Shown here one piece after another: positions 4,026-64,000 of a DNA stretch of 64,000 nt (within the stretch, counting starts at the first letter, position 1; the number at the start of each line of letters is the position of its first letter). This DNA is from Macrostomum lignano. Lineage: Eukaryota. The translations under genes and the position numbers were made by a program. The stretch is from assembly GCA_002269645.1 (NCBI GenBank), contig NIVC01001774.1:1-64000 (forward strand), read 5' to 3'. The notes beneath the pieces were generated by a model, which saw only the letters and a list, made by a program, of their open reading frames with translations, was not told the DNA's origin and did no database searches.

Positions 4026-7000
4026 CTTCAAGCCAGTCTGCCTGAACGGCCAGCCGACCTGCCTGCCGGACATGAACTGCCAGCGTCTCTACACCGAGTG
4101 GTCGGCCTGGTCGGCTTGCTCAGCCGCCTGCGGCGAGGGTCTCAGCCACCGAACTCGCCAGCTGCTGCAGGAGGGCCGCCGGCCAGCCGGCTGCGGCAAG
4201 TCGGACCTGATCGAGACGCGCCACTGCAACGCCCGCCGTGCGGCTACGCTTGCAAAGATCGGAATGGCGACTTGTACACCGAGGGACAGGCTATGCCGGC
4301 GCTGGACCAGTGCTCCATGTGGTGAGCTCAAGCTCTTCATGCATGTACACCCGTGCATCTCCTACATGCGTGTCTAATAGTGAGATTCGATCTGGCCTGG
4401 ACCTCAGCATGCAGTTAGATACAGACGTTCGAAATCATATTTAATCAACTACAAGCCTCACCCTTTTAATGTCGGTGGTGACTTTTAATGTCGGTTGGTG
4501 ACTTTTAATGTCGGTTGGTGACTTTTAATGTCGGTGGTGACTTCTAATGTTGTCAAGCATTCCGCAACCTTTATTGCACGCATTATATTGGAGATTACAC
4601 TATTTATTTTTTAATACTGTACGCGTATGCGTAATTCCAAACTGTTTCTCGCACAGACAGCATTATTAACATCCTCAACCAACTGCAGCTTCTGCCGCGC
4701 CAATCGCACCGAGTGTGTCAGCAAGGCGAAGGTAGGCGAGCCGGTGCCCACCCCGGTCTGGTCGGCCTGGTCAACCTGGAGCTCCTGCGTCAGCGCGGCT
4801 GCCAACAACCGACGCCAGGAGCGGCGCCGCCGGTGCGTGCGCATCTGTCCAGACGACCCCAGGAAGTGCGGAGAGTTCTTCGACAAGGAGGAATCGGTCG
4901 AATGGAAGGCTTGCCTTCCCAAAACACCGCGTAAGCACTTTGAAATGACAGTGTTGGGACGGGTGGGGGTCGCAACTCTCCCATTTCTACCGCAGCTCAG
5001 CGCTGCTTCAAGCGTACTAACCGATATCAACTCAGCTTAACTTGCATGTTCTGGCGACCTCTCTTCTCCCCAGTTCTGAAACGAGACTGCATTGTGTCGC
5101 CGGATTGGATCGAGGGCACCTGCTACGCCAACTGCATGGTCCGCTCCGCTGTGGCCAGAGGATTCCGCACTCTCTACCGGCGAATCCTTCAGCTGCCGGC
5201 GAACGGAGGCGCTCCGTGCCCCGAGCTGCGCCGCGAAGACGTGCCGTGCACGAAGACCTGCCCAGTCGACTGCTCGCAGACCGCCTGGTCTGCCTGGGGC
5301 GCCTGCGTCCGCGCCTCCAACTCCGGCTGCTCCGGCCTGCAAGTGCGGTCGCGCGGCGTCTTAGTGCCGCCCGCCAACGGAGGCCGCGCCTGCGAGGACG
5401 CCAAGCAGCTTCGGTCCTGTCTGGCGCCCGGCTGCCAGACCAGCGCCTGTCGGGCTCCAATGACGAAGCAGCCGCTACAGCAGAGCCGATGCATCGTCCG
5501 CTGCTCTGATCTGGCCAGCGAAGACAAGTGCGCGCCAGTCCAGGCTGCCAACGCTGCGGCCGTCAATGCAACAGTGTGTGCCTGTCCTGCTGGCCAGTAC
5601 GAACAGGACGGTCGCTGCGTGGCCAAGCAGGCCTGCCGATGCCGCTGGAACGAGGAACTGATGGGCCAGCGAAGTCCCGGCACCAGGGAGGAGTTCGCAG
5701 CCGGGGAGCGGCTTGTCATGGGCTGCAAGAACTGGTGAGCGGCGGTGAACTCTTCTGCACTTACTAAATACCCATTGAAGCACATGTACTACTGTTCAAA
5801 CAACCAATGTACTGACTGCATAGTGGCCTATCCTGCAATCAGAGAATACAGATGATTGTAAGGTGGCTTAGACCACTGCCACAAATCAAGACGACATGAC
5901 AGTCGACCCCTGAACACCCCACCCGGATGCGTATGCGGGCTCACACAGGGTGTACAGTAGGGGGCGTAGCCTAGCGGTCTAACGCAGCGCTCTGATGTTT
6001 CAGCGGCCCAGGCTCGATTCCAAGTCCAGTCATAATAATTTGGGGTTAAATTGGAATCTCGGCTTGGCTCTGCTCGTGCAATTAACGGCCAGCTTGAGGG
6101 CCAACCTCCAAGGCACAGTGAAGTGTATATGCCTAACGATAAATAAAGTCAGGGCCGCTGTACACTCCTGTGTGAGTGTGTGCCTGTGCGTATGACTGCG
6201 TACGTATCCTTGCGCTTGTGTGCCTGCTCAGGGGATGCTCAGTGCATACTACTAGCACACAGCCTACCTTCCTCTGCCTCTAATACAGGGTGTACTGCAC
6301 CCCTGACATTCTTATCGTCAGGAGTGTACACTTTTTGTAGCTTTTGTGGGTTGCCCTTTATTGGCCAGAATAGTGCAGAAAACTCTGGGCCAATATTCGT
6401 GCACTAAAGCCCCAAGTTGAGTGTGGCTCACTCACGGAATTTAACCCATGGGGCCGTATGGCGCGAGGGTCGGACGCGTTTACCGCTGAGCAGCCCCCAC
6501 CCATGTAAAGGTGGCTACCTGATTGCTAATTATCGTTACTCTGCCGGTATTTAACAGCACCTGCCAGGACGGAGTGTTCAAGTGCAACCGGCTGTCGAGC
6601 TGCTCGGACGAGTGCCACTGGTCCAACTGGCGTCCCGAAGGCAAATGCACCGCCGGCTGCCGGCTCAAGCCGGGCCTGCAGAAGTTTGTGCGCTCGCCGA
6701 GAAACTCGGACTACCTGCCGACTAAGGCCTGCCAGGGACCGTCGGTGAAATACGAGCTGTGCAGCTCAACTCGAAGCTGCGGTAAGTGTGCAAAAAATAT
6801 GAAACTTTTGTCTAAATGTCAATCTACAAATGAGTACTAAGTCTCTCTAAACTTTCCGATCTCTAAGTTGTGTACCGCACAAAATGCAATAAGCATCAGC
6901 CCGGTAGCAGACCCTAAATTTCAGCTGCCGTCATCCAGATTCATAAGCCCTAATCTTTCCAATTCCTAACTGACAACGCCTTGAAAGCTCAATAAAACAG

Positions 7001-14853: not shown

Positions 14854-16344
<1,491 letters not shown>

Positions 16345-16374
16345 CTGCGGGTGCGCGGAGATGGGAATCCAGTC

Positions 16375-16988
16375 AAGCTCCAATCCCTGCACTCAGCTCA
16401 GATCCCTGCACTCAGCTCCAATCCCTGCACTCAGCTCCAATCCCTGCACTCAGCTCCAATCCCTGCACTCAGCTCCAATCCCTGCACTCAGCTCCAATCC
16501 CTGCACTCAGCTCCAATCCCTGCACTCAGCTCCAATCCCTGCACTCAGCTCCAATCCCTGCACTCAGCTCCAATCCCTGCACTCAGCTCCAATCCCTGCA
16601 CTCAGCTCCAATCCCTGCACTCAGCTCCAATCCCTGCACTCAGCTCCAATCCCTGCACTCAGCTCCAATCCCTGCACTCAGCTCCAATCCCTGCACTCAG
16701 CTCCAATCCCTGCACTCAGCTCCAATCCCTGCACTCAGCTCCAATCCCTGCACTCAGCTCCAATCCCTGCACTCAGCTCCAATCCCTGCACTCAGCTCCA
16801 ATCCCTGCACTCAGCTCCAATCCCTGCACTCAGCTCCAATCCCTGCACTCAGCTCCAATCCCTGCACTCAGCTCCAATCCCTGCACTCAGCTCCAATCCC
16901 TGCACTCAGCTCCAATCCCTGCACTCAGCTCCAATCCCTGCACTCAGCTCCAATCCCTGCACTCAGCTCCAATCCCTGCACTCAGCTT
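16375..16988. repeat. 19-bp minisatellite CAGCTCCAATCCCTGCACT, ~32 near-perfect units (shorter copy 23058-23220, followed by a related 22-bp array 23221-23436)
   Basis: Direct reading; 19-aa and 22-aa periodicities in the overlapping ORFs. Confidence 0.95.
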
Positions 16989-19900
16989 CAGATCCCAGAG
17001 CTTTCGACGCTGTAAAGTTTGGAGCTTGTGGAGTTTGGAGCTTGTGGAGTTTGGAGCTTCTGGAGTTTAGAGCTTCTGGAGTTTGGAGCTTGTGAAGTTT
17101 GAAGCTTGTGAAGCTTGAAGCTTGTGAAGCTTGAAGCTTGTGAAGCTTGAAGCTTGTGAAGCTTGAAGCTTGTGAAGCTTGAAGCTTGTGAAGCTTGAAG
17201 CTTGTGGAGTTTGGAGCTTGTGGAGTTTGAAGCTTGTGAAGCTTGGAGCTTGTGGAGTTTGGAGCTTGTGGAGTTTGGAGCTTGTGGAGTTTGGAGCTTG
17301 TGGAGTTTGGAGCTTGTGGAGTTTGGAGCTTGTGGAGTTTGGAGCTTGTGGAGTTTGGAGCTTGTGGAGTTTGGAGCTTGTGGAGTTTGGAGCTTGTGGA
17401 GTTTGGAGCTTGTGAAGCTTGAAGCTTGTGGAGCTTGGAGCTTGTGGAGTTTGGAGCTTGTGGAGTTTGGAGCTTGTGGAGTTTGGAGCTTGTGGAGTTT
17501 GGAGCTTGTGGAGTTTGGAGCTTGTGGAGTTTGGAGCTTGTGGAGTTTGGAGCTTGTGAAGCTTGAAGCTTGTGGAGTTTGGAGCTTGTGGAGTTTGAAG
17601 CTTGTGGAGTTTGGAGCTTGTGGAGTTTGAAGCTTGTGAAGCTTGGAGCTTGTGGAGTTTGGAGCTTGTGGAGTTTGGAGCTTGTGGAGTTTGGAGCTTG
17701 TGGAGTTTGGAGCTTGTGGAGTTTGGAGCTTGTGGAGTTTGGAGCTTGTGGAGTTGAAGTTTATGGAGTTTGGAGTTTGGAGCTTGTGGAGTTTGGAGCT
17801 TGTGGAGTTTGTAGCTTGTGAAGTTTGGAGCTTGTGGAGTTTGGAGCTTGTGGAGTTTGGAGCTTGTGAAGTTTGAAGCTTGTGAAGCTTGAAGCTTGTG
17901 AAGCTTGAAGCTTGTGAAGCTTGAAGCTTGTGAAGCTTGAAGCTTGTGGAGTTTGGAGCTTGTGGAGTTTGAAGCTTGTGAAGCTTGGAGCTTGTGGAGT
18001 TTGGAGCTTGTGGAGTTTGGAGCTTGTGGAGTTTGAAGTTTGTGGAGTCTGGAGCTTGTGGAGTTTGGAGCTTGTGGAGTTTGGAGCTTGTGGAGTTTGA
18101 AGTTTGTGGAGTTTGGAGCTTGTGGAGTTTGGAGCTTGTGAAGCTTGAAGCTTGTGGAGTTTGGAGCTTGTGGAGTTTGAAGCTTGTGAAGCTTGGAGCT
18201 TGTGGAGTTTGGAGCTTGTGGAGTTTGGAGCTTGTGGAGTTTGGAGCTTGTGGAGTTTGGAGCTTGTGGAGTTTGGAGCTTGTGGAGTTTGGAGCTTGTG
18301 GAGTTTGGAGCTTGTGGAGTTTGGAGCTTGTGGAGTTTGAAGTTTGTGGAGTTTGGAGTTTGGAGCTTATGGAGTTTGGAGCTTGTGGAGTTTGTAGCTT
18401 GTGAAGTTTGGAGCTTGTGGAGTTTGGAGCTTGTGGAGTTTGGAGCTTGTGGAGTTTGGAGCTTGTGGAGTTTGGAGCTTGTGAAGTTTGGAGCTTGTGG
18501 AGTTTGGAGTTTGTGGAGTTTGGAGTTTGTGGAGTTTGGAGCTAGTGGAGTTTGGAGTTTGTGGAGTTTGGAGTTTGTGGAGTTTGGAGCTTGTGAAGTC
18601 TCAATCTTGGGAAGTCTCAATCTTGTGAAACGACCGTTCCTTCTCTACTACACTTCATCGCCCCATAGTCCCAACCTAAGCCTAAACTGCAGTGTACGCT
18701 CATAAATTCACTTTGCCCCTGGTCCTTTCTCTCTAACCCTTTCATTCTCCATTGCAAGTATTACGAGCGTAATTGCAGATTTCGCGTCCTGGCAAATAAA
18801 TAAAATTTATGAAAAATCACTGCCAATCATTTCGATTGTTAAAATATGAGCGCAGTCTGCTCACTCCGATTCAGCAGAGTTTAAATTAGATCGACATGTC
18901 GAAGTGATGTAATAAGGAATCATATAGTTTATTTCTGTGTTGCATCAGAAGAGAGCCATTAAAAAATAGAAAAAGCACAATACTAACAAAGATTCGAATT
19001 GGTTTGTTCAATTAGCTGAGTAGCATCAGTAGGAATTACGTGCGTGTACGAGAATTAATAAAGACAATAGTATAGTTACCACAATCAATGCCTGCGTTGA
19101 AAAAACTATTTTGATTGCCTAATTGTCAGGAAAGCTATCAGAATCACGTGACGCAGCCAAAGATTTCAAGTCAGTTACAGCAAACAACCTAAAAACCCTG
19201 GCCAACTTTGCGCCCCTTAAGTTTTTTAACTAAATTTTATTGCCCAAATGCTGACGCACACTAGGTCTACGAAACAAATAAAGTTATCTGTCACATTGAT
19301 AAACTTAAGATGAGTTTGTCCCCGTGCCCTGCCTCTTCTCTACCCCATTTTATTGCCCTATAGTCACACCCCTAAGTCTAAACCGCAATGTACATTATCT
19401 GCCGTCTCCCGCCTTGATAAATGTACGCTCGTACATCAAATCAGTCCTGTCCCAGTCTCTTCTCTATCCAATTTTATTGCCCTACAGTCACACCCCTAAG
19501 TCTAAACCGCAATGTACATTATCTGCCGTCTCCCGCCTTAATAAATGTACGCTCGTACATCAAATCAGTCCTGTCCCAGTCTTCTCTATCCAATTTTATT
19601 GACCTACAGTCACAACCCTAAGTCTAAACCGCAATGTAAATTATCTGCCGTCTCCCGCCTTGATAAATGTACGCTCGTACATCAAATCAGTCCTGTCCCA
19701 GTCTTCTCTATCCAATTTTATTGACCTACAGTCACACCCCTAAGTCTAAACCGCAATGTACATTATCTGCCGTCTCCCGCCTTGATAAATGTATGCTCGT
19801 ACATCAAATCAGTCCTGTCCCAGTCTTCTCTACCCCATTTTATTGCCCTATAGTCACACCCCTAAGTCTAAACCGCAATGTACATTATCTGCCGTCTCCC

Positions 19901-21436: not shown

Positions 21437-33217
<11,781 letters not shown>

Positions 33218-45160: not shown

Positions 45161-46506
45161 TACGAGGTGTATTCAAAAAGTTCTTTTCGGTGCGCTACAA
45201 AACTGAACACAAAACAACTGGAACTATGAAAACACTGTTAGATTGCTTAACATGATTCTGTCACTCATTCACCGCCAATGTCTTTGCACTTCTGCCAGCG
45301 ATTTACCAGGCCTCTGATTCCGGAACTCACACCACTCGCGTCCGTTTGGCGAACAGCTTGATTGCATGCAGCTTCGATGTGCTCGACGCTGTCAAATCGA
45401 ATGCCCCGAAGGTGCTTCTTCACAGATGGAAATAAGAAGAAGTCGCACGGCGACAAATCAGGCGAATAGGGTGGATGTTAGAGCACTTCCCAGCCCCATT
45501 TGCTCAGGAGTTCCACGACGTTGTGCTTGCGATGTGCTGGCGCATTGTCGTGCAGCAGGATCACGCCAGATTCCAGCAGACCAGGGCGCTTCTTTCGTAT
45601 TGCTGGGCGCAGCTTCTCCTGCAGAATCCACTTGTAGTAGTCCCCATTGACGGTGGTTCCTTGTGGGACTGCCCAGTTCAGCAGGATTCCTTGGGAATCA
45701 AAAAACATGACGTGCATGATCTTTATCGCGCCCTGCTTCCTGATGGCCTTCTGAGGTCTTGGAGAATGTGCTGGAAGCCATTCGGCAGACTGGGCCTTTG
45801 TCTCAGGATCCCAGCTGTAAACCCACGTCTCGTCTCCAGCAACAATTCTTGATAGAAAATCCTCCCCTTCTCGATGGAACCGACGCAGGTGGCTGCTTGA
45901 AGCCAGAGTTCGCTGCATCTTTTGCTCACCTGTCAGCAGGTGTGGCACCCACTTGCAGAACTTTTTCTGTAGGAGAAGACGCTCAGTCAGAATAGTGTGG
46001 ACGCTTCCTACTGACACACCAACGTCTTCTGCCAACTCTTCGCAAGTCCGTCGCCGATCATCATCCAAGAGCTCTTGCACTTTCTTCACAACAGTCTCTT
46101 TGGTTGCAGTCATCGGCCTTCCAGAGCGGCCATTGTCCTCAACGCTCTCTCTTCCCTCAGCGAACAGCCGGTACCATTTTAGAACTGTCTGCTCAGTTGG
46201 TGCACAGTTGCCAAGCACTTGCTGAAGCTCCCTAAACATATCCGGTGGCTTTTTTTCCTTGCAGAAACTGAAACTTCATCAAGCTTCGAACGTCTTGCTT
46301 TGAAAATGATTCAGCCATGGCCAAGAAATTGAGTGGCAGCTGATAGAAATGTTCGCTGCTCTAACATAGTTGCAAACTGAGACTTAAAACCCTAGGAACG
46401 TTTAGGCCATAGACATAACTTGGTAAAATCGCTAAAATTCTGTTTACAACGCTTTCTAAAAATAAATGCCAAAGGACCGAAAAGAACTTTTTGAATAAAC
46501 CTCGTA
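45161..46506 (-). mobile_element. Full-length mariner (DD34D) transposon with a disrupted transposase
   Basis: 28-bp TIRs CGAGGT(G/T)TATTCAAAAAGTTCTTTTCGG (1 mismatch) with TA at 45161-62 and 46505-06. Transposase from ATG 46318: WVPHLL, GDETW, HDNA-34aa-D, HPPYSPDL. +1 frameshift in the A7 run at 46250-56; TAA at 45478-80 just before HPPYSPDL. Confidence 0.97.
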
Positions 46507-46743: not shown

Positions 46744-56635
<9,892 letters not shown>

Positions 56636-60776: not shown

Positions 60777-60879
60777 CTGCGGCGTGAGAGATTATCATAT
60801 TTATCATATTATTATTGATAATATTTATTATATTATATATTGATAATATTGTTAATATTTATTATTATTGATATTTATC

Positions 60880-61127
60880 ATACGCGAAGGTGTATTCAGC
60901 ACGCCAGTGAAGTATGAGACAGACCAGGCCTAAGGGCTACGGTCTGCGATGCTTCACGCCTGCCCCTATATTCAGCAGGTCAAGGCTGGAGAGGGAGGTC
61001 TGCACCCGCTATTTGCCACTGGCAGCCGCAGACCCCCCCCCCCTCACGCTGTTTCACAAGTCGACCCAGGGTACTCGTCCCCGCGTGTGTTCAAGGCAGA
61101 CCCTAGGGCTGCTGGACAGACTGGGCT
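60880..61127 (+). ncRNA. Candidate HDV-like self-cleaving ribozyme
   Basis: Manual fold: P1 60880-86/61082-88, P3 GGG/CCC around L3 UACUCGU, J1/4 GU, P4 hairpin 61091-61116, J4/2 CAGA(C), imperfect P2 GACCCA/UGGGCU. Confidence 0.6.
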
Positions 61128-61353
61128 CCGACGCTGGCGACCCATCCAGTGGCTTCGGCCGAATTTGGGTATGCGGGTCTGGCTTGCCAGCCTGCAGGCC
61201 GTGGTACTGCTTAACGTACCCCCTAATGCCTAAGGTGTTTGACCGTGCCGATGGGCTGGAAGGCCGGGGGGTTGTCCGGTCGCTAGCGGTCCTTTTCTTT
61301 TTCTTCTTTCCTCTTTCTTTTGTGACTCAGCTCACTCCTTCCCGCTTTCAGCT

Positions 61354-62820
61354 ATGGCGTCATCCGCCTCTTTAACCCCCGCTGAAGCCGGGGCCCCGGC
61401 AACTCCGGCCGGTGACTCTGGCACCAGCGCCGCCCCACCGGGGGCAGATGGGCTTGCCGCCGGCTCGGCTGGTGACATGCCCGCACGCGCAACCGGGCCC
61501 TCCGCTGAAGCCCGACGCACCCGCAACCAACGCCGCAACGAGCGGCGACGGCGACTACGGGGTACTGCGGGCCGGCCACCGGCGGAAGGGGAACCTAGGG
61601 AGGGCGAGGCTGCTGTTGGGCCGAAAGGAACCACAGCAACCCCTGCCCCCCAGGATACAACCCCCGCTGGTGAGCCACCCAGTATACCTGCTACAAGCGC
61701 GGCCGGGCCTTCGGGAACCGCCGCCACCAACTACGCCTCAAAGGTCAAGCTCCAACCGGCGGTCATCGTCTTCGGGGAAGAGCAGGACCTCACGGCCGAC
61801 GAGCTCGACAGTGCCTGGCGCACCATCGATGCTGCGCTCATCGACCAGCTCCTGGCGGGCCGCCCTGTGAGCGTGGTCAAGTCTGCCAAGACCGACGGCT
61901 GCATCTTCATCTGGTGCAGCTCGGAGGAGAGCAGCCGCAATCTACGCGAGCTTCTGCCAAAGCTGAACTGGCCCAAGAAGCTCGGCAAGCTCGTCTTCGC
62001 CAGCGAGGGCGAACGACAGAAGACCCAGCGCTTTCGCGTCTGGATCCCGGCCGGCAGTGCCATTAAGTCCGGAGATCAGCTTAGGCAAATATTGCTAAAG
62101 CTGCACCCCGACCTTAAGGTCAACGGGCTCCTACACCACGCCACTTCCCGCAAGGAGAAGGGGGCTACGGTGATCCTAGGGCTCTCTGATGACTGGGCTA
62201 AGCGCTTGCCGCCTAAGTCCACAATTCATATTGGTCTGACTCAGCTGACCATCCTCCGTTGCGAGGAGCGGAAAGCTGATGAAGCCAAGAATGCCAAAGC
62301 TTCCGAAACCGGAACTGGGGCCCAGGCTCCTCCGGCAAAGAAGCCGAGGCAAACGGCCGATCCTATGCCCGGTAAGGCAGTTCGCGCTGCTGAAACCGGA
62401 AATCGCAATCGCAGACCCGCCAGGAGCACCCGGAGGTCCGGCCTGATCCAGCGCGCGCTGGACCAGGCCAAGAACCTTCGTGCGCATCGTGAGCGGGCCC
62501 GCGCTTCTCGCGCTCCACCCCAACAGCCAGAAGGCCAGACTCTAAGCGGGGAGGCTCCGACCGACTGGTTCGAGTCTGTGACTCACCAGGAGGCTGGCGC
62601 CACCCGCATCGACCTGACCGACGAGGCAGAGGGGACGGGCAGTGACAGCACCGAAGCACGCAGGAGAGGCGACGGTAACGTCCACGCTGGGCTCACGTCC
62701 GCGGAGGACTCCACAGCCACCCTAACTGCTGAGGACGCTGAAACTCCCATGGAGGTCTGCGGGTCACCCACCACTGAAAAGGAGGAGGATGACCTGCTCA
62801 ACGATTCCCCAACTGCGTGA
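61354..62820 (+). CDS. Retrotransposon ORF1 (488 aa; low-complexity ends, central folded domain, no obvious CCHC knuckle)
   Basis: Uninterrupted ORF immediately upstream of the APE-containing ORF2. Confidence 0.88.
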   Translation: MASSASLTPAEAGAPATPAGDSGTSAAPPGADGLAAGSAGDMPARATGPSAEARRTRNQRRNERRRRLRGTAGRPPAEGEPREGEAAVGPKGTTATPAPQDTTPAGEPPSIPATSAAGPSGTAATNYASKVKLQPAVIVFGEEQDLTADELDSAWRTIDAALIDQLLAGRPVSVVKSAKTDGCIFIWCSSEESSRNLRELLPKLNWPKKLGKLVFASEGERQKTQRFRVWIPAGSAIKSGDQLRQILLKLHPDLKVNGLLHHATSRKEKGATVILGLSDDWAKRLPPKSTIHIGLTQLTILRCEERKADEAKNAKASETGTGAQAPPAKKPRQTADPMPGKAVRAAETGNRNRRPARSTRRSGLIQRALDQAKNLRAHRERARASRAPPQQPEGQTLSGEAPTDWFESVTHQEAGATRIDLTDEAEGTGSDSTEARRRGDGNVHAGLTSAEDSTATLTAEDAETPMEVCGSPTTEKEEDDLLNDSPTA

Positions 62821-62822
62821 TA

Positions 62823-64000
62823 ATGATCAGCAACCAGGGAATCCATTGCCTGCAGATTAATCTGCAGCACTGCGTCGCAGCCTCGGTCAACCTTATGCGT
62901 TACGCCGAGCTCGACAAGCCGGGGCTCATCCTCGTCCAGGAACCCTGGACTCTCAGAGGTAAGCCTCAAAACGCCCCTGCTGGCTACAATTGTTTTTATA
63001 CTTACCCTCGCGAGGCCAACCAGCCTCCCAGAGCTTGCATCTTTGCGAGCAAAACGCTCAGTGCGTGGCTCAGATCGGACCTGTCCAACAGGGACATCTG
63101 CGTCATCCAATCCGAGGACCTTCTTCCTGGGAAGACCACCCTCATTGCCTCGGTTTACCTACCAGGCGATGCTGCGGTCGTCCCCAGAGCCCTCGCTACG
63201 CTGGTAGAGCTCTGCTCTGCCAAAAACTACGAGCTCATGGTTGCCGGCGACATCAACGCCCACCACACTCACTGGGGCAGCACTGGCATTAATCAGAGAG
63301 GCGAAGACCTCCTAGCCTACGTTGCCTCTACGACCCTCGAGTTCTGCAACTCTGGGTCCACCCCTACCTTTGACAACGGACGGTGGTCGGAGGTGATCGA
63401 CGCTACGCTCGCAACGCCCAGACTCTACCAGAGTATTGGGGCGTGGCGGGTGCTTCCAGTGTCCTCACTATCGGATCACAAGTTCATCTCCTTCAACCTA
63501 ATGGCCGCGCGTAGCGCAACTCGTGTTATGTGGAGACGGAACGCCAGAAATACGGATTGGGAAACCTTCGGGCTCGCCCTGAAGGAATTCCATCGGTCTC
63601 CTGGCCAACCATCCACGATCACGTCGTGCCGAGAGGCGGATGAGTGCGCGACTGTTTTGACAGAGACGCTAACCGCCGCCTTTGAGGCGTCCTGCCCTTT
63701 AAAAGCCTATAAAGGGAAAAAATCGGCGCCGTGGTGGAATCCCGAGCTCGGCAACCTCCGTCGCAGGGCTAAGAGACTCCACCGCAGAGCAACTAAAACT
63801 AAGAGCCCTGCAGACCAAACCGCCTATCATGAAGCAATTCATGAGTTTAAAAGGCAGGTTAGGAATGCAAAGGCTCAAAAATGGCGACAATACTGTGAGG
63901 AGCTAGAGGGCTCACGCCCCACCTCCAGAGTTGTGAAAGCGCTCACGCTGGACAAAATGTCTAAGCTCTCCTCGGTCAAACGCACCGACGGTACGTCCAC
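62823..64000 (+). CDS. Retrotransposon ORF2, N-terminal part (APE endonuclease and linker; RT expected downstream)
   Basis: Translated by hand, open to the window end: QINLQH, VQEPW, SVYLP, GDINAHH..WGS...N.RG, PTF, IDAT, SDHKFI, PWW..EL..LRR. Absent from the ORF track, presumably because it has no stop. Confidence 0.95.
   Translation, partial: MISNQGIHCLQINLQHCVAASVNLMRYAELDKPGLILVQEPWTLRGKPQNAPAGYNCFYTYPREANQPPRACIFASKTLSAWLRSDLSNRDICVIQSEDLLPGKTTLIASVYLPGDAAVVPRALATLVELCSAKNYELMVAGDINAHHTHWGSTGINQRGEDLLAYVASTTLEFCNSGSTPTFDNGRWSEVIDATLATPRLYQSIGAWRVLPVSSLSDHKFISFNLMAARSATRVMWRRNARNTDWETFGLALKEFHRSPGQPSTITSCREADECATVLTETLTAAFEASCPLKAYKGKKSAPWWNPELGNLRRRAKRLHRRATKTKSPADQTAYHEAIHEFKRQVRNAKAQKWRQYCEELEGSRPTSRVVKALTLDKMSKLSSVKRTDGTS

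Follow-up and report, generated by a model that had tools for sequence, protein, structure and literature searches.

At the end of the 64,000-nt stretch of Macrostomum lignano DNA analysed here (the window), an AT-rich repeat gives way to the first bases of a non-LTR retrotransposon. A preliminary description proposed that these bases form the 5′ strand of P1 in an HDV-like double pseudoknot with a long J1/2. Does the element begin with its own self-cleaving ribozyme? A published descriptor of HDV-like ribozymes comprises a G1-Y35 pair, the L3 bases U19, C20, C21, C23, and G24, two P1.1 pairs, and C-R-R-A in J4/2 (PMC6326823). Measured against this descriptor (PMC6326823), the window copy matches at U19, C21, C23, and G24, carries a G after P1, and has a C-A-G-A that fits C-R-R-A, whereas C20 is replaced by A and the +1 base is A instead of G.

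Element layout and genomic setting

The plus strand from 60880 to the end of the window at 64000 comprises the 5′ part of a non-LTR retrotransposon (Table 1). In a profile per 10 nt, the G+C content rises from 0–20% in the upstream repeat to more than 50% from 60880 onward. TRF stretches the repeat to 60882; consequently, the exact host/element junction is uncertain by up to 3 nt. A G+C-rich block adjoins the AT-rich repeat, and its only long open frame, of 245 codons, lies on the minus strand next to an acceptor-like minus-strand sequence (...ctctcacgccgcag). From these sequence features, the element probably resides in an intron of a host gene that is probably encoded on the minus strand. 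As the flanking exon is on the minus strand, the element copy would lie antisense inside this intron, and the co-transcription suggested earlier cannot be with this host gene.

Table 1. Coordinates of the 5′ part of the retrotransposon, its putative ribozyme, and the upstream flank in the window
Feature	Positions	Strand	Details and basis
Host flank, AT-rich imperfect tandem repeat	60792–60879		Units of 16–34 nt; TRF, G+C per 10 nt
5′ UTR, 474 nt	60880–61353	+	Upstream of ORF1
P1 5′ strand, AUACGCG	60880–60886	+	Predicted +1 is A60880; element's first bases; 7/7 with 61082–61088, one U·G
J1/2 insert, 173 nt	60887–61059	+	About four hairpins (60889–60905, 60907–60957, 60958–60980, 60983–61044); constrained folds
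P2 5′ strand	61060–61068	+	Outer GUCG 61060–61063, unpaired A61064, inner CCCA 61065–61068; pairs with 61122–61132
P3 and L3	61069–61081	+	GGG 61069–61071/CCC 61079–61081 closing L3 UACUCGU 61072–61078; P3 invariant in four elements
P1 3′ strand, CGCGUGU	61082–61088	+	Pairs with 60880–60886
P1.1	61089–61090	+	C61074–G61089 as one firm pair; U61090 may pair with A61073
P4 hairpin	61091–61116	+	Main stem 61095–61102/61106–61113, one A·G mismatch; folds, alignment
J4/2, CAGAC	61117–61121	+	C61117 is the candidate general-acid cytosine; C-A-G-A at 61117–61120, then one extra C
P2 3′ strand	61122–61132	+	Inner UGGG 61122–61125, loop CUC 61126–61128, outer CGAC 61129–61132; structural alignment
Remaining 5′ UTR past the ribozyme	61133–61353	+	Hairpin, 18-mer, pyrimidine tract; alignments, TRF
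ORF1, 488 aa	61354–62820	+	No Pfam match, no CCHC knuckle
ORF2 N-terminus, APE-type endonuclease	62823–64000	+	PF14529 (2.1e-19), PF03372; continues beyond the window

An ORF2 with the order APE-RT-RNase H is common to several clades, and a gag-like ORF1 with CCHC zinc knuckles is typical of R1, LOA, Jockey, and I. The ORF2 architecture of LOA/R1, the type tentatively proposed in the preliminary description (APE followed by RT, with RNase H in LOA), is represented by the APE domain in the window and by APE, RVT_1, and RNase_H in the related element L010 described below. ORF1, in contrast, lacks the CCHC knuckle of LOA/R1: it contains four cysteines in total, and the motif C-x2-C-x4-H-x4-C is absent. 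The closest named match of ORF2 is a spider protein with 31% identity, and a UniRef relative of ORF1 is named as a DUF4780-domain protein. An exact-protein look-up found neither ORF1 nor a spurious 153-aa ORF of the 5′ UTR on record, and self-BLAST of 60780–64000 revealed no further copies of the element within the window. Self-BLAST also uncovered an imperfect palindrome in the coding sequence of ORF1, where 100 nt (62407–62506) are 75% similar to their own reverse complement.

The HDV-like fold of the window copy

Each of the pairings listed in the preliminary description is present in the window sequence. Within 480 nt upstream of the P1 3′ strand, 60880–60886 is its sole 7/7 partner, and it sits at the switch from AT- to GC-rich sequence, just where the P1 5′ strand had been claimed to mark the element boundary. 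Partners of this quality occur about once per 500–1000 nt (0.001–0.002 per nt), and the chance that one lands within a few bases of the composition switch is ~0.01. The predicted +1 of the window copy is an A paired with U, compared with the usual G paired with Y.

Parts of the earlier model had to be revised. P2 had been described as weak; its CCCA/UGGG helix is present, but P2 is in fact bipartite (4+4 bp), as GUCG 61060–61063 pairs with CGAC 61129–61132. Since P2 continues past a small internal loop to 61132, the putative ribozyme spans 60880–61132 (253 nt). In P4, the register was corrected, and the stem now comprises GGCAG 61095–61099/CUGCU 61109–61113 together with CC/GG at 61101–61102/61106–61107; its pair probabilities in the computed fold range from 0.46 to 0.99. 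A basal extension of P4 by U61090–A61116, U61091·G61115, and C61092–G61114 is possible, with the first of these pairs competing with P1.1 for U61090. With these parts, the HDV-like strand order (P1-5′, P2-5′, P3-5′, L3, P3-3′, P1-3′, P1.1, P4, J4/2, P2-3′) is complete in the window and in L010, and its core is present in two further related elements, L002 and L011.

In the computed ensembles, the HDV-like fold is energetically competitive. Forcing P1 and P3 yields −96.7 kcal/mol versus −102.0 kcal/mol for the MFE, a cost of 5.3 kcal/mol relative to the nested MFE with P2 excluded; the two parts of P2 amount to about −7 kcal/mol, which is not included in the P1+P3-forced figure. For the isolated core, forcing P2 and P3 yields −27.5 versus −27.8 kcal/mol, a gap of 0.3 kcal/mol. 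The P1 pairs reach a probability of at most 0.006 in the plain MFE ensemble, and overall fold stability does not discriminate (z = −1.8 for plus, −2.0 for minus).

HDV-like descriptors hold few fixed bases and produce many false positives, and the site has to be weighed against the possibility that a permissive motif has matched G+C-rich sequence by chance. Our Python descriptor consists of a 3-bp P3, a 7-nt L3, a 7-nt P1 3′ strand, a G, a P4 hairpin, C-N-R-A, and a P2 of at least 4 bp adjoining P3; 100 block-wise dinucleotide shuffles of the window served as control. With L3 left unconstrained, the real window contains 18 core matches versus 5.85 per shuffle. The motif is common without the L3 constraint, and hence the specificity of the descriptor rests on L3. 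Such abundance speaks for a chance match, and a plus-strand fold z of only −1.8 points the same way. With L3 set to UNCNCGN or NNCNNGN, however, the candidate is the only match on both strands of the window (128 kb) that also has a P1 partner. The shuffles yield 0.01 core matches per 128 kb for UNCNCGN and 0.27 for NNCNNGN, of which 0.08 also have a P1 partner no more than 300 nt away. The descriptor was drawn up with the site already known, and the rates therefore err in favor of the site. On these figures, a chance origin of the site is unlikely. Together with its location in the sense-strand 5′ UTR, the position of P1 at the element boundary, and the covariation in three relatives described below, they render a chance match extremely improbable.

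A covariance-model search, which had been suggested as a check, returned no HDV-family Rfam match, neither for the whole window at the gathering score, nor for slices of 700 nt and 100 nt at E ≤ 10, nor for the core of L002. This null result is expected: about five bases are conserved in the family (PMC4870747), and the narrow models are unable to cross an insert of 173 nt. Nor does an Rfam match define an HDV-like ribozyme.

Conservation and covariation in related elements

Word-indexed protein searches returned one close relative of ORF1, which led to L002, a metagenome contig whose ORF1 is 66% identical to that of the window over the alignment. A HMMER search with the central domain of ORF1 produced 25 relatives, of which all named ones are from Macrostomum lignano and the best is 52% identical; for P0006, the best Macrostomum relative, no contig is on record. 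The same search gave three Logan contigs, with L010 and L011 among the sources of the core. L010 is a full-length element, with ORF1 at 548–2125 and an ORF2 of 1232 aa. A separate protein search with the central domain returned nothing, a metagenome scan with the ORF1 alignment confirmed none of 330 candidates, and viral contigs scanned with two patterns held no match. Three contigs from a metagenome scan with the core DNA pattern (L005–L007) were discarded as unrelated chance matches, and six others (L001, L003, L004, L008, L009, L012) do not reach the ribozyme.

L002, L010, and L011 carry the ribozyme core upstream of ORF1, in the same place as in the window. In the 5′ UTR of L002, GGG-UUCUCGU-CCC is followed by the P1 3′ strand CGCGAGC, a perfect P4, a C after P4, and a longer P2. 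The P1 3′ strand reads GCAGGCA in L010 and GUGGGU in L011, compared with CGCGUGU in the window. L3 of the relatives reads UUCUCGU, UCUCCGU, and UUCCCGU, and all four elements conform to U-N-[C/U]-[U/C]-C-G-U, so that U1, C5, G6, and U7 of L3 are kept in 4/4 elements. The C directly after P4, with two purines before it, is likewise kept in all four. At L3 position 3, the P1.1 cytosine is found in three of the four elements, with a U that forms a U·G pair in L010; the second P1.1 pair is formed by A-U (window) or C-G (L010) and is absent in L002 and L011. The bases that start with the conserved C differ between the elements: CAGA in the window, CGUG in L002, CUGC in L010, and CACUGA in L011. C-R-R-A or C-N-R-A after the conserved C thus occurs in the window copy only, and L011 fits only via its second C. 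As J4/2 varies among the relatives, its adenines are not a feature of this element family.

If the element boundary coincides with P1, a relative with a complete 5′ end should pair its own first bases with the strand that follows P3. The L010 contig begins at the base homologous to window 60880/60881, and its bases 1–6, GCCUGC, pair 6/6 in Watson-Crick geometry with the GCAGGC after its P3, as predicted. The positions had been set before the test, and the probability of such a pairing by chance is about (1/4)^6. Both strands differ from AUACGCG/CGCGUGU of the window at most positions, and the first contig base is a G paired with C. ATA 60880–60882 could also belong to the host repeat as its last bases; against this, the structural equivalent of 60881 in L010 is already element sequence. 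At most one base separates the start of the L010 contig (Logan run ERR14788467) from the predicted cleavage site, yet at the 3′ end the contig runs past the element into apparently unique sequence. Should ERR14788467 be an RNA-seq run, the contig start would itself map the 5′ end of a processed RNA.

MAFFT lost the register of L010 and L011 when aligning the core, and an alignment by hand was therefore imposed. It covers the four elements with N for gaps and artificial spacer blocks, leaves out J1/2, and was evaluated by counting pairs on the named pseudoknotted structure. This procedure leans towards the model, yet conserved blocks on either side dictate where the strands lie. In the named structure, 97.8% of 92 cells form standard pairs, and 13 of the 28 pairs are changed on both sides. 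In contrast, controls in which the 3′ partners were slid by 1–3 columns show 30–40% pairing and 0–2 pairs changed on both sides, and none of 500 shuffles reaches the observed pairing values.

Broken down by helix, changes on both sides affect 5/7 pairs in P1, a figure drawn from just two sequences (window and L010), as neither the L002 nor the L011 contig extends to the 5′ end. In P2, 3/11 pairs are changed in this way, in P1.1 1/2, and in P4 four of the five basal pairs across the four elements, while P3 is invariant (0/3). Covariation of P1, P2, and P3 in other copies had been named as a check: P1 and P2 do covary, as do P1.1 and P4, but P3 does not. P2 is bipartite in all four elements. The second pair of its outer helix alternates between U-A, C-G, and U·G, whereas its inner helix exchanges C-G for U-A and A-U for G-C at two positions and carries a matched 2-bp extension in L002. 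Within J1/2, the hairpin at 60907–60957 is kept in L010 with three compensatory pairs, and the hairpin at 60983–61044 recurs in L002, where its stem has another sequence. Consequently, the complementary yet differing strands of L010 and the covariation support what had been proposed for the window, namely an HDV-like double pseudoknot with P1 at the 5′ end of a non-LTR element and a long J1/2.

These data also bear on a real ribozyme with a different, proximal P1, which would cut inside the 5′ UTR by pairing with CACGC 61045–61049 in the window or GCUCGC 76–81 in L002. The L002 contig stops 75 nt upstream of this proximal partner, short of the expected distal P1. The 6-bp partner in L002 would generate a compact ribozyme with a short J1/2 and a G at +1, and the window offers a 5-bp partner. 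The two sites are, however, not homologous between the elements, and the window bases aligned to L002 76–81 pair in only 3/6 positions. Moreover, a 6-mer partner within ~100 nt is expected ~0.2 times by chance, and cleavage at a proximal site would lose upstream sequence that is conserved in the window, L002, L010, and L011. Given the non-homologous sites, the conserved upstream sequence, and the distal P1 confirmed by L010, we rejected the proximal arrangement as very unlikely.

Proposed cleavage model, alternative roles, and known ribozymes

Judged from the sequence comparison, the fold at the 5′ end of this LINE constitutes a genuine HDV-like fold and very probably a working ribozyme. The complete assignment, namely that 60880–61132 on the plus strand is an HDV-like double-pseudoknot self-cleaving ribozyme that constitutes the 5′ terminus of an APE-type non-LTR retrotransposon with two ORFs, is in our view probable. 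In the proposed mechanism, transcripts entering the element from upstream would fold such that the first seven bases pair with 61082–61088 across the 173-nt structured J1/2, and the bipartite P2, P3/L3, P1.1, and P4 would assemble the active site. The general acid would be C61117 at the start of J4/2, a catalytic role that we infer. Cleavage would then occur between C60879 and A60880, with the predicted site precise to within 1–3 nt, and would release an element RNA with a 5′-OH that starts at the element's first base. With the cut at its own first base, each new copy would carry the entire ribozyme and need no promoter of its own; a role in retrotransposition is presumed, and the ribozyme possibly also contributes to cap-independent translation of ORF1.

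The remainder of the 5′ UTR contains further conserved features. Just 3′ of the ribozyme, a hairpin at ~61140–61170 has homologues in L002, L010, and L011; it has an outer stem ACCCA...UGGGU and an inner part that varies from GGC-UUCG-GCC in the window to CCGG-AGCU-CCGG in L011. Stacking on P2 is one possibility for this hairpin; alternatively, it may be part of an element for translation or protein binding. The 18-mer GTCCGGTCGCTAGCGGTC at 61274–61291 is identical in L002 (380–397), although the window and L002 are only ~75% identical overall, and L011 harbors a near-identical 18-nt block, GTCTGGTCTCTAGCGGTC, at about 292–309. It is followed in the window by a pyrimidine tract (61292–61322, with CTTTCCT repeats at 61292–61319) and then by CUUUCAGC-AUGG, a conserved context of the ORF1 start. 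Five upstream AUGs are located in the 5′ UTR (60914, 60949, 61171, 61226, and 61251). Together, the pyrimidine tract, the conserved context of the ORF1 start, and the upstream AUGs suggest that ORF1 is not reached by plain cap-dependent scanning. In L012, a tandem duplication of ~95 nt (1–190) affects a 5′ UTR segment that is found in L002 and L010 but is missing from the window.

Such a 5′ UTR, with its conserved hairpins, 18-mer, pyrimidine tract, and five upstream AUGs, would also suit a conserved pseudoknotted structure that does not cleave (IRES-like, bound by the ORF1 or ORF2 protein, or used for packaging) and resembles the HDV topology by coincidence. Covariation demonstrates that a structure is selected, not that it is catalytic; the J4/2 adenines vary among the relatives, and no Rfam model matches. 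Against a non-cleaving structure, most descriptor-fixed positions are kept (U, C, and G of L3, the G after P1, and the C after P4; PMC6326823), barring the +1 G and the second P1.1 C. In addition, P1 starts at the element's first base in two independent elements, which a cleavage site explains and a binding element does not. We therefore regard a purely non-cleaving structure as unlikely. The cleaving and binding readings need not be mutually exclusive, since both roles have been proposed for R2 ribozymes (PMC6765202).

The variable J4/2 leaves room for a further interpretation, which we rate as unlikely. Here, the element family would represent a distinct HDV-like subclass, defined by a bipartite P2, a conserved multi-hairpin J1/2 of ~170 nt, and a J4/2 in which the cytosine alone is retained, with the active site completed otherwise; alternatively, the fold would be partly re-used as a platform for cap-independent translation or protein binding. 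The cytosine-only J4/2 of this subclass derives from the intact relatives L002 and L010, in which the adenines that canonical members dock into P3 are missing. The R2 family, in contrast, keeps the J4/2 adenine, its adenines being rigid.

For the HDV-like ribozyme that we favor, each of the unusual traits of the window copy has a precedent. The J1/2 loops of silkmoth R2 measure 216–498 nt and are partly needed for cleavage, and P1 of fruit-fly R2 has evolved by compensatory changes (PMC3774820). Structured J1/2 domains activate or accelerate the ribozyme (PMC4908430), and ribozymes at the 5′ end are known in R4, Dong, baggins, RTE, and L1Tc (PMC3774820, PMC6765202). The preliminary description had raised an alteration at integration as a possible origin of the A at +1, which is speculation: the active L1Tc ribozyme also has a +1 other than G, namely C, and a G at +1 is thus usual but not obligatory (PMC3185411). 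These precedents were counted in favor of a ribozyme; the A at +1 of the window copy was itself counted against it.

The closest parallels differ from the window element in characteristic ways. As in R2, R4, and Dong (PMC3774820), a double pseudoknot heading a non-LTR element would release the element RNA from a longer transcript; these ribozymes likewise have a P1 of 6–7 bp with extensive compensatory changes, a variable P4, a J1/2 that can be very long, and a P2 that is often mismatched. R2, however, has a single ORF and a restriction-like endonuclease, inserts site-specifically into rDNA, and is often cut 28 nt upstream in the 28S gene, whereas the window element has two ORFs and an APE endonuclease, is intronic, and has its predicted cut at its own first base. 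Baggins of the LOA clade and RTE (PMC6765202) are, like the window element, intronic APE-type LINEs without a known promoter of their own and with a 5′-end ribozyme; the likeness is drawn from their description rather than from ribozyme sequences, and the window copy differs in being antisense to its host gene. L1Tc of Trypanosoma cruzi (PMC3185411) is an APE-RT-RNase H LINE whose first bases form an HDV-like ribozyme that cuts at +1. L1TcRz, however, is compact (77 nt), has a short J1/2, and doubles as internal promoter, in contrast to the 253 nt and 173-nt insert of the window ribozyme. The mosquito ribozyme drz-Agam-2 (PMC4908430) is also large and holds a structured peripheral domain between P1 and P2, which is a single P1.2 helix there and a multi-hairpin domain in the window.

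The literature that we searched describes no ribozyme for Macrostomum lignano or Macrostomum-like flatworms. The candidate reported here, an HDV-like ribozyme backed by covariation, belongs to a LINE family in which every named relative comes from Macrostomum lignano, and it would fix the true 5′ end of the element, which aids annotation. It supports the general picture that promoter-less LINEs depend on read-through transcription and self-cleavage, and leaves current understanding unchanged. The example is unsurprising; self-cleavage of this type is already known as a means by which such elements shorten their transcripts. The variable J4/2 of the intact relatives provides a small natural test set for the strictness of the C-R-R-A rule.

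Elsewhere in the window, an ORF at 45478–46239 on the minus strand encodes a mariner-type transposase (PF01359) with a HTH_32 domain and constitutes a DNA transposon remnant. An exon-like ORF at 5046–5738 on the plus strand contains two spondin-type TSP1 domains; like the transposase, it indicates that the host is an animal. Kilobase stretches of extreme GC skew (−0.53 to +0.65) occupy 15000–19000 and 22000–25000; their long ORFs match repeat families (ALTTAQ repeat, Cornifin-like) and are low-complexity repeat-coding or satellite-like. At 53783–53852 on the plus strand, Rfam reports a tRNA match of 31.9 bits against a threshold of 29, where ARAGORN makes no call; the match may correspond to a tRNA-derived repeat or pseudogene.
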